A stretch of DNA of 63,810 bases, filler included, from Reticulomyxa filosa (taxonomy: Eukaryota > Protista > Foraminifera), in NCBI GenBank assembly GCA_000512085.1. It is 17 parts of 17 records of this genome, joined end to end, with 100 filler letters (N's around TTAATTAATTAA, not from the genome) between each part and the next. Parts side by side here need not be neighbours in the genome. Positions count along the whole stretch, not along the records: positions 50,434 to 52,535 come from ASPP01027305.1; 16 more parts are not named here. One strand, given 5' to 3'. The translations under genes were made by a program, and so were the position numbers. This document shows, piece after piece, positions 50,434 through 52,635 of this stretch (position 1 is the stretch's first letter; the number at the start of each line of letters is the position of its first letter). The notes under the pieces are model-generated. The model did no database searches. It had not been told where the DNA came from and worked only from the letters and a program-made list of their open reading frames with translations.

Positions 50434-52138
50434 AAGGAGGCGTATTACCTTATAAGAAATTCTTCAAAGAAGAAAATATGGCTGAAATACGGTTTGCGAT
50501 TGAACATTTCGAAACGGCTGTAAAAAGCATCCGTTCACAATCGAAACAAAACCAACAATTGGAAAAACAGAAATCACAATCGGAAGAAAAGATCTCAGAG
50601 CTACAAGGGACCGTTGAATTAAGTAAGGAGAATGAGCCGACCACATTTACTATTTCCATGGGTACCAAAACAGAATTCAAATTCATTTTTCCTGACTATG
50701 CAAAAAATTTTTTTGTAAACTGCGAGCTAGAGAGCGAATGGGGGACAGTTCATGTTACTCACAGCTTTAATGTTGCTTACAAGATAAATGGAAAAAGCCG
50801 CCAAAAATCGATGGATTTTAAAAACAAATACAAGGACCAGAGCACCACACAAAATAAATTGTCTGTTATGAATGAATATGATATAGGAGAGAACATTTCA
50901 GGCAATAGTTCCAGAGATAATAACATGCCTGATCCGAAAACTCCATATTCACTTTTTATTCAAGCAGAGTTTGGCCAAGACGGTATAATCACCAGGATAG
51001 CAAGCGCAGACGATGGGGAGGATGAGAAGGACAATACACTGTTTCCTATGCATAATCAAGCAAAAGAAGTAGCAGAGGATATTTTATTCTGCATTGATAT
51101 ACTTAAAAAAAAATACTGCCAGATTTAGAGAAAATGAAAAGCACGGATGTAACATATAATACACTCAATCAAGCAAAAATAATGCTTGTTAATACAATTG
51201 CGCGCTGGGGCAGAGATCTTAGACATGCGATCCAAAAAAGCAAGAGCTCTCATCAATTGAAGAATATACCATTCCTATCTATGGTACCGAGCAATCTAAA
51301 TAGCTTAACCTTCTCTGAACTGTTTCGAACACAATTCATTACTATAGTGGAGGATGTAACACTTAGCGCGCTTGGTAAGATTTGTGTATTTGGAGGTGCT
51401 GGATCTAAAATCCTAAAGCCTATCGATGAATGTACTGTACTTGTAGAGCATCATGCTCAAGCAGGCAGTCTACTTTCAGTCGTAGCGCCTGCTATATATG
51501 GAAAAGTCATCATCAAATCCGCGTACTGGGAGGAGACGATCAAGGAATTTGAGAAGATAGACCCAGAGAAGATGACAACAGATAAAAAAACACGACAAGC
51601 AAACGGAAATATTTGGTTTACCTCGATGTTGGGCACAGAGAATAGCAAAGATATGGATGATGCCATCTTTGGCGGTACATATAACCTCATTACTACTGAA
51701 CAGATTTTGAAATTAAGAATCCAGTCCCTCGGCTTAGCTCATCAAGTCCAAATCTTAGGGAAAGGATATTTCATTAACCGAGAGTCAAATAATATCAAAC
51801 AGCTTGTACGTATTAGCAAGACAAGTTGTATTGGCTATCAGTTGTTGCCTATTAATCTTCATGACCATTGTGTTGGTGTCATTATCTGTGGTAACCAGCT
51901 ACATTACATTGACCAGAAAACAATCCTATGTCAGATCAATTAAAAGAGATCTTTCAACAAGCTGGCTTCGATGCTCAACAAATTCTGTCTGAACGACAAC
52001 AATATGCGGAAACTGTGCTCCTGTCTGGATTGAAACTTGTGTCATGTACTTGGGAGCAGATCTTTCTCTCAAACTGAGGCTGTTGCTTGTCACGCAGAGC
52101 TGTTTGGCTTATCTCCCTCTCTGAAGCATAAGAATTAA
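50434..52138 (+). CDS. Intronless protein with a C-terminal CE-clan/Ulp1-like cysteine protease (putative deubiquitinase); four 1-nt frameshifts; 5' partial
   Basis: Frame open from the contig start. ORFs 50478-51128 and 51134-51943 join across an A9 run. Reconstructed tail: 'LLPINLHDHCVG...HYID(P)ENNPM...ERQQYA(x)NCAPVWIE...YLG...SQTEAVACHAEL'. Confidence 0.65.
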
Positions 52139-52635
52139 AGGAGTAGTTAGTTTGTCATCAAAGCAAATTTTAAAAATTTTGATTTCTTTGTTGAATTTTT
52201 TTCATTGCTTATATAAAGGAAACTTTTAAAGTAACAGTATTGTAAAAAATGTGCAATTTTTTTTTTTGTATTAGTATACATACTCACTCTTGAGGTATAC
52301 ATTTTGTCATTATGTGCTCTTGGCACTATTTCCTTTACATAATATTTACTTTGTTTGTTTTTCCTTTGGTTTGTTATTTGTTGAAGATTTATTATTATAT
52401 CACTATTTTCATAAATATCATTCATTATTTTTTTTTCTCTTGAAAGTTTCCATCATTAGAGACAATCAATATTCTAATGAAAAGTCAACATTTTTAAAAA
52501 AATATTTAGTTTCCAAATATGTCGATTTTCTTTTCNNNNNNNNNNNNNNNNNNNNNNNNNNNNNNNNNNNNNNNNNNNNTTAATTAATTAANNNNNNNNN
52601 NNNNNNNNNNNNNNNNNNNNNNNNNNNNNNNNNNN

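Follow-up and report, generated by a model that had tools for sequence, protein, structure and literature searches.

Predicted RickCE-like CE-clan proteases form a gene family in genome data of the foraminifer Reticulomyxa filosa

How did a protease domain whose outside relatives are all bacterial, and mostly from Rickettsiales, come to be present in several copies in the genome assembly of a foraminifer? This question is raised by a gene found in a window of 63,810 nucleotides of Reticulomyxa filosa (assembly GCA_000512085.1). The window is the whole stretch of DNA that was analysed; it consists of 17 parts of 17 records joined end to end with filler letters between them, and positions are counted along it unless a contig is named. 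The gene lies in the piece at 50434-52535, which comes from ASPP01027305.1. The explanation that best joins the data, and to which we give a probability of about 65%, is that the gene belongs to a family known only from R. filosa and carrying a RickCE-like protease domain, that this domain passed a single time from a symbiont to the nucleus, that amplification followed and that the copy in the window is, as assembled, a pseudogene.

An interrupted gene with a predicted protease domain

The window piece is composed of a coding part (50436-52138, 38% guanine plus cytosine, GC) and an AT-rich tail (23% GC). In three-frame translation of the plus strand, on which all parts of the gene lie, the coding region 50436-52135 appears as five stop-free pieces with four one-position frame changes between them. 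The first piece (50436-51125, 230 amino acids, aa) is open to the 5' edge of the contig, the second (51107-51940) has 278 aa, the third (51913-52074) and fourth (51993-52121) are likewise stop-free, and the fifth (52034-52135) is closed by the stop codon at 52136-52138. No in-frame stop occurs among the 565 codons assigned to these pieces. The frames were placed by tblastn with the R. filosa paralogues and by DNA alignments with three paralogous contigs, in which all four breaks correspond to a one-column gap in the window relative to in-frame paralogues, with the shift in the same direction. The initial annotation had proposed that a single protein would be obtained once four frame breaks were mended, and the paralogue alignments bear out all four sites. 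As written in the assembly, the window copy is a pseudogene. Its 5' end is missing, being cut by the contig edge, and the paralogue on contig L002 extends about 35 residues further upstream. The folds and profile searches described below refer to intact natural paralogues or to single pieces of the window gene.

The first half of the protease domain, which includes the catalytic His and Asp, is found at 51515-51913 and is 65-69% identical to the intact paralogues. Right after the Asp codon a CC pair (51913-51914) marks the second break, with a one-column gap versus contigs L001, L002 and L004. The middle of the domain (51916-52008), with the motif ENNPM.DQLK... and the oxyanion Gln, is 75-81% identical to L001 and L002. 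It is followed by the third break, a GG pair (52008-52009) two codons before the catalytic Cys, where a one-column gap versus three paralogues was also seen. The segment with the Cys (NCAPVWIE..., 52011-52061) is 100% identical to L001 and L002 over 14-17 residues. After the fourth break (52062-52063), at which the DNA alignment has two bases versus one codon in the paralogues, comes the C-terminal tail of the domain with the stop codon (SQTEA..H.EL..., 52064-52138), which aligns to the paralogous proteins P0001 and P0005 and to the bacterial motif LSQEEAI.YHS.LLE.

The catalytic codons are located at 51866-51868 (His), 51911-51913 (Asp), 52000-52002 (Gln) and 52014-52016 (Cys), exactly where the initial annotation had placed them (51866, 51911, about 52000 and 52014). 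In the intact paralogue P0001 they correspond to H83, D99, Q128 and C134, giving the spacing His-16-Asp-29-Gln-6-Cys. These four residues are invariant wherever they are covered in the R. filosa and bacterial alignments, and the motif N-C-x-P-xx-I-E is also invariant between R. filosa and its bacterial relatives. An order His-Asp-Gln-Cys, with Glu or Asn also allowed for the Asp and with the Gln about six residues before the Cys, is the one given by MEROPS for clan CE. The spacing His-16/17-Asp and Gln-6-Cys of Ulp1/SENP1 is the same as in R. filosa. In SENPs a Trp follows the catalytic His, whereas R. filosa has a Cys in that position.

The AlphaFold model of P0001 shows the order of strands and helices expected for clan CE, at a predicted local distance difference test score (pLDDT) of 52. 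An exhaustive comparison of this model with 48,161 PDB representatives gave a list whose first 28 entries are without exception enzymes of the CE clan or Ulp fold (Z 4.2-8.2). OtDUB had the highest score (Z 8.2), followed by RickCE (Z 7.1), CidB (Z 7.0), SseL (Z 6.2), African swine fever virus pS273R (Z 5.8), ChlaDUB (Z 5.7) and the group of SENP, Ulp1 and adenain (Z 4.2-5.2). The three best matches, OtDUB of Orientia (6UPS), RickCE of Rickettsia bellii (5HAM) and the deubiquitinase domain of Wolbachia CidB (7FIU), align over about 114 residues of a model of low confidence and show no detectable sequence similarity in PDB searches. These sequence searches, run with the 278-aa piece, with P0001 and with a family profile, gave chance hits only. 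Foldseek and the ESM Atlas also returned CE and C48 proteins, no Foldseek E-value being as low as 0.001. With a pLDDT of 52, the model shows the Ulp1/adenain-like alpha/beta fold of clan CE, in which adjacent strands bear the His and Asp and the Cys begins a helix.

Taken by its sequence, the domain is a predicted CE-clan (Ulp1-fold) cysteine protease of the RickCE-like type, putatively acting on ubiquitin or a ubiquitin-like protein. It would work as a thiol protease, with a His-Asp-Cys triad and the oxyanion Gln, and would cleave behind the C-terminal Gly-Gly with which ubiquitin or a ubiquitin-like modifier is attached, at an isopeptide or a peptide bond. The CE-clan fold and catalytic order proposed initially are upheld by the 28 of 28 top representatives and by the residue spacing. 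Among the PDB representatives the best matches were the Rickettsiales enzymes and not SENP/Ulp1 proteins, the outcome that had been named as speaking against the proposal.

Relatives in Rickettsiales and copies in R. filosa

A tblastn search with P0001 against 72,556 plasmids returned four records, all of them from Rickettsiaceae (Rickettsia and Megaira; E 3e-22 to 7e-9). They comprise a plasmid of the Rickettsia that lives in Culicoides impunctatus, which matches 90% of the query at 39% identity (E 3e-22), two plasmid records of Ca. Megaira polyxenophila and one of the Megaira of Mesostigma. The matching proteins have 978 to 5,225 residues and carry the domain at their C-terminal end or close to it. 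When 185,579 species genomes of bacteria and archaea were scanned with a pattern, 13 loci with 27-37% identity were obtained, belonging to Tisiphia, Megaira, Rickettsiaceae metagenome-assembled genomes (MAGs), a Rickettsiales MAG, Midichloriaceae, one Legionella MAG and one unclassified proteobacterial MAG. The bacterial loci total 17 (4/17 on plasmids), and a metagenome scan added 24 further loci with 28-43% identity. Both productive scans used a pattern shared with bacterial sequences; earlier scans with the 278-aa piece and with patterns taken from R. filosa only, which were too strict, gave no locus in genomes of bacteria, in metagenomes or in viral contigs.

Alignment of the R. filosa family with the bacterial one by hhalign gave a probability of 99.9% (E 3.6e-31, 145 columns, 38% identity). 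The bacterial members reach 22-28 bits on the Pfam family RickCE_cat (PF22179), for which the cut-off is 27, and two of them lie above it, so that the R. filosa proteins are linked to the RickCE-like family through their relatives (tblastn, hhalign) and not through a Pfam score of their own. Given the plasmid, genome and profile matches, the label "Rickettsiales-style CE-clan protease" rests on homology and not on resemblance alone. The kinship suggested initially is borne out by plasmid matches confined to Rickettsia and Megaira and by the hhalign probability, and the motif then cited is, according to the alignments, the bacterial consensus (Q.Y.NCGP..IE...YL.G.R.SQE.A..H).

In Rickettsiales (Rickettsia, Tisiphia, Megaira, Midichloriaceae) and some Legionella the domain is found at or near the C-terminus of large modular proteins. 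Individual RickCE-like domains, such as that of UCM86434.1 (plasmid pRiCimp001, Rickettsia of Culicoides impunctatus), are 31-39% identical to the R. filosa domain over about 150 residues; further relatives are WP_282487221.1 and WPX99843.1 of Ca. Megaira polyxenophila and UCM94756.1 of the Megaira of Mesostigma. Common to both sides are the H/D/Q/C residues, the motifs YIDPENN.IP, Q.Y.NC.P..IE and LSQ.EA..YH, and the position of the domain at or near the end of a longer protein. The differences include NCAP in R. filosa versus NCGP in bacteria and a His-Cys pair versus bacterial His-Ala or His-Trp. Moreover, the bacterial proteins are 980-5,200 residues long and bear different N-terminal modules, for which the annotations are AAA ATPase, GTPase, SecA-like or RPE2, whereas the N-terminal 400 or so residues of the R. 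filosa proteins match no module of a RickCE-like protein. The family also differs from CidB/CifB, as it has neither a CifA partner nor nuclease modules: no PD-(D/E)XK module was found in the N-terminal 400 aa and no adjacent cifA on the five contigs. One of the bacterial loci, at 5001-5510 of contig L014 (Rickettsiaceae MAG bins.46), has an internal stop inside the CE domain, and decayed copies are thus found in bacteria as well.

If there were no bacterial link, the source could be an ordinary eukaryotic SENP/Ulp1 protein, or a Ulp1-like protease of a transposon or giant virus. Eukaryotic Ulp1/SENP/DEN1 proteases (PF02902, MEROPS C48) share clan and fold with the domain, and one R. filosa paralogue bears a Ulp profile name in UniProt. 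The best ESM Atlas folds are in fact plant transposon-linked Ulp1 proteins (template modelling score 0.56) and a C48 cluster of nucleocytoplasmic large DNA viruses; besides, the family is multi-copy, adjoins a transposon relic and gives a weak match to Pfam Peptidase_C48 (PF02902). That match was obtained with one paralogue only and its best score, 14.5 bits (E 0.032), falls below the gathering threshold of 20.7, so that membership of the eukaryotic Ulp1/SENP family was rejected by this measure. The structural scores of SENP/Ulp1 are also lower (Z 4.2-5.2 versus 7-8.2), no relative was found in viral contigs or phages (searches of phages and of BFVD gave no real match), and no transposase is encoded in frame with the family. 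The sequence homology to Rickettsiales (E 3e-22; hhalign 99.9%) is decisive here, and we regard a purely eukaryotic or viral source as very improbable.

In the exhaustive HMMER search of 1.84 billion representatives, all three real relatives of the 278-aa piece came from R. filosa (RFI_12209, RFI_39514 and RFI_32086); the bacterial relatives are absent from this result because the query was without the Cys half. RFI_35183 came to light in a word-based search; its name in UniRef is that of a "Ubiquitin-like protease family profile domain" protein. Searches of this kind, within a limited range of protein length, gave R. filosa proteins and no others. The paralogues are carried by four contigs of the same assembly (L001-L004, 1.0-3.4 kb), with 75-80% DNA identity to the window copy and 72-95% among themselves. 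They confirm every junction of the window gene, and the protease domain is an intact open reading frame in two of the four. The family is multi-copy and known so far only from Reticulomyxa filosa. It counts at least five copies, which have diverged and are for the most part broken or truncated; an intact full-length gene was found on none of the five contigs, nor was a second gene found on any of them. L002 carries the fullest paralogue, near full length with a 406-aa open reading frame; its frame changes once, near 2908-2926, and its sequence is cut off by the end of the contig. In L001 the frame changes at least twice but the domain is intact, and L004 has an intact domain frame of 238 aa and has lost its 5' part. 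L003 is nearly identical to L004 over about 330 bp, with a one-base gap that breaks its frame.

Most copies of this family are either missing from the public annotation of R. filosa or broken up in it. In the model RFI_32086 (L002 1706-2926) a 45-residue "intron" is cut out which is conserved coding sequence in the window, and the 5' exon of RFI_35183 has no counterpart in the other copies. The annotated introns of the family look spurious, that is, artefacts of gene prediction.

In the trees, which are unrooted and in which the window pieces were joined with an X at each break, the four R. filosa copies group together in a single clade (support 100/100), and its stem is long, at 1.7-1.9 substitutions per site. 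Bacterial sequences are found on either side of this clade, at splits with moderate support (85/87 and 94). The pattern fits one putative acquisition followed by amplification.

The protease domain is under purifying selection and the N-terminal 400 or so residues evolve nearly neutrally. By the method of Nei and Gojobori, applied to in-frame segments, the ratio of nonsynonymous to synonymous substitutions (dN/dS) is 0.18-0.26 in the protease domain (dS 0.4-0.9) and 0.56-1.0 in the N-terminal part; for the window copy versus the L002 domain it is 0.52. The low values of the domain imply that purifying selection acted on it while the copies diverged, the N-terminal part being barely constrained.

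It was also considered that the four breaks are sequencing or assembly errors and that the living organism has an intact gene, which would be compatible with either origin of the family. They are four one-column gaps of the same direction at short or long single-base runs, no nonsense codon occurs in the 565 codons, the dN/dS of the window domain against the paralogues is still low (about 0.25-0.5) and the assembly is highly fragmented; moreover, the near-identical L003 and L004 differ by the one-base gap that breaks L003. On the other side, three of the breaks are crowded into 150 bp and fall in runs of no more than 2-3 bases, which is unusual for homopolymer error, and other copies are truncated or broken elsewhere, so that decay does occur in the family. 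We put the chance that the breaks are errors slightly below even.

L003 780-1170 and L004 237-628 are near-identical over those 330 bp or so and diverge completely upstream. They may be either alleles, recent duplicates or one locus assembled twice with an indel error, and their one-base difference bears on the trust to be placed in single-base gaps of the R. filosa assembly in general. Programmed frameshifting was rejected as a source of the breaks in the window, as a slippery run exists only at the first and not at the other three. Euplotes-type +1 shifting was also rejected, since the four one-position shifts are without the required stop-codon context.

The family protein has about 600 residues, of which the N-terminal 400 or so precede the protease domain of about 170. 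In the window the N-terminal region begins at 50436-51104 (first frame piece), where it aligns to RFI_32086 and the L002 reading frame with 31-34% identity. The first break (51105-51113) lies inside an A9 run, with a one-column gap versus L002 in the DNA alignment and a switch of frame between the tblastn segments. The second part (51110-51514) is conserved in L001, L002 and the window copy. Outside the protease, no block of the family is better conserved than the one in this part at about 51385-51455, which has the motif VFGG.GSKILKP...LVEHH and 87% DNA identity to L001 over 71 bp. This region had been called unrecognised in the initial annotation, in agreement with searches of Pfam, NCBIfam, PDB, plasmids and the Atlas, which found no relative outside R. 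filosa, and with the lack of any match in the bacterial loci carrying the domain, flanks included. The sequence AAGGAGG at 50434 falls inside the conserved reading frame and was rejected as a Shine-Dalgarno site.

Host nucleus or symbiont

Integration into the nuclear genome after horizontal transfer is the location that we favour and consider likely. The flanks of the five contigs, 4.5 kb altogether and 0.3-1.6 kb per contig, have 21-28% GC and are nearly without open frames (12% cover), versus 70-100% open frame, with a median of 85%, at 41 bacterial and metagenome loci. The contigs themselves (1-3.4 kb) are host-sized, the N50 of the R. filosa assembly being 3.6 kb. In the window copy the stop codon is followed by a stretch common to paralogous copies (52139-52267; blastn homology to L001 up to 52218, and to L004 at 52194-52267), which is probably a 3' untranslated region or part of the duplicated unit. 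The remaining flank (52268-52535) is unique to this copy and has long T runs, no recognisable gene and a GC content of 20-25% versus 38% in the gene; promoter- and terminator-like sites were no commoner than in shuffled sequences.

Three of the copies are accompanied by a relic of a Tc1/mariner-like transposase, found at L003 543-794, at L004 112-234 (inverted) and at L001 2701-2811. It matches HTH_Tnp_Tc3_2 (E 2.8e-4), has an in-frame stop followed by 'WKKVMFSDETKINLY', and carries the typical eukaryotic signature W..V.FSDETKI.L. In L003 and L004 the relic directly adjoins the copies, which lack their 5' part, and in L001 it is seen again 1.4 kb downstream of the copy. It is probably a dispersed repeat of R. 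filosa that truncated one copy.

R. filosa was sequenced together with a Midichloriaceae symbiont of 1.31 Mb, 37.5% GC and 1,445 genes (Castelli et al. 2024, PMC10847448). The contigs could accordingly belong to this symbiont, or to another bacterium of the culture, and hold a partly decayed effector family mislabelled as host DNA. This would agree with the origin of both sequences from the same DNA, with the equal GC content of symbiont and gene, with the wholly bacterial and mostly Rickettsiales outside relatives, with the lack of an intron and with the frequency of repeated pseudogenes in Rickettsiales, as in the locus on L014 with its internal stop. It does not agree with the nearly frameless flanks, with the eukaryotic signature of the relic that adjoins three copies, nor with the host-like size of the five contigs. 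Furthermore, the R. filosa family stands far apart from all sampled bacteria, a Midichloriaceae MAG among them, with at most 39% identity to any of them and a stem of 1.7-1.9 substitutions per site, and its N-terminal part is absent from all bacterial data searched. We therefore judge a symbiont or culture bacterium to be an unlikely source of the contigs. The initial annotation had named both a symbiont effector and an integrated copy; this pair of alternatives is kept, the AT-rich flanks and the relic leaning towards integration, as had also been proposed, with some weight left to the symbiont.

The data against nuclear integration of a RickCE-like domain must be set beside this. The GC content of the symbiont (37.5%) is close to that of the gene (38%), the bacterial searches left out the genome of the R. 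filosa symbiont (Zenodo 10.5281/zenodo.10324454), and the gene copies are without a spliceosomal intron. Rickettsiales genomes can hold repeated, decaying genes and AT-rich spacers. As to the domain itself, R. filosa proteins reach no Pfam threshold, and PF22179 (RickCE_cat) gave no match to any R. filosa sequence or window piece at E-values up to 10; searches of the five window pieces against Pfam and NCBIfam were equally without a match. The model of P0001 is of low confidence, and a second AlphaFold model of a longer construct was worse (pLDDT 47) and was not used. Finally, we infer the direction of transfer from symbiont to host, like the nuclear location, from indirect data, in the case of the direction from taxon distribution alone, with an unrooted tree and searches that are blind to eukaryotic relatives of about 35% identity.

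According to nuclear integration, the domain would have passed in one transfer from a Rickettsiales-type symbiont to the foraminiferal nuclear genome, where it may have been fused to, or have grown, a host-specific N-terminal part. Amplification into at least five diverged copies would have followed, with the protease domain under purifying selection throughout.

In supplementary file 7 of PMC10847448 (sheet "Reticulomyxa"), which covers a reassembly of the original R. filosa reads (Glockner et al. 2014), high-coverage ribosomal RNA contigs are listed which are 100% identical to Euplotes aediculatus, plus several bacteria; the ribosomal RNA contigs of the symbiont reach a coverage of about 90-100x. 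Foreign DNA may be present in the R. filosa reads and perhaps also in the public assembly.

A second protist case and the meaning of the family

The same CE domain was found at 1-1536 of the metagenome contig Ga0102912_1000351 (L035; 8,549 nt, 23% GC), where it is 56% identical over 197 aa to a plasmid protein of Ca. Megaira polyxenophila NDG2. The longest open frame there has 79 aa in translation table 11 versus at least 512 aa in table 6, the ciliate nuclear code. This frame contains 32 in-frame TAA/TAG codons versus 10 CAA/CAG and no TGA, and the conserved "QQ" that precedes NYANCGPEVIE is written with two of the TAA/TAG codons. The sequence has the look of an independent transfer of the domain, from a Megaira-like symbiont to a nuclear genome of ciliate type. 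If this case and that of the R. filosa family are both true, protist hosts would have received RickCE-type domains from symbionts repeatedly and put them to use.

Bacterial-type CE or OTU deubiquitinase genes were described in the genomes of Armadillidium vulgare and Ooceraea biroi (Gillespie et al. 2018, PMC6133264). They share with the present family the occurrence of a CE-clan effector-type domain of intracellular bacteria in a host-type eukaryote assembly. The arthropod genes, however, lie in recognisable Wolbachia or prophage insertions and are still close to their donor, whereas the family of R. filosa, a protist, does not exceed 39% identity to any bacterium and has been amplified and joined to a host-specific part. 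The RickCE-like CE-clan domain is of a known kind, and what draws interest is its occurrence, amplified and under selection, in the assembly of a foraminifer with a Rickettsiales symbiont; in the literature searched we found no paper linking Reticulomyxa with CE-clan proteases of the RickCE-like type.

CE-clan deubiquitinases are well-known tools by which Rickettsia, Orientia, Wolbachia, Chlamydia and Legionella rewire the ubiquitin signalling of their hosts. We suggest, tentatively, that a foraminifer may have taken an effector-type deubiquitinase domain of a symbiont into its nucleus, joined it to a new N-terminal region and expanded the resulting family under selection, and that, together with the ciliate-type case, this may reflect a repeated passage from symbionts to protists. 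The R. filosa assembly is flagged by these results for comparison with its symbiont. If the explanation is true, it would be a clear flow of an effector domain from symbiont to host outside arthropods, in a protist with a Rickettsiales symbiont, and it would provide a documented symbiont-derived gene family for foraminifera, whose genomes are barely explored.

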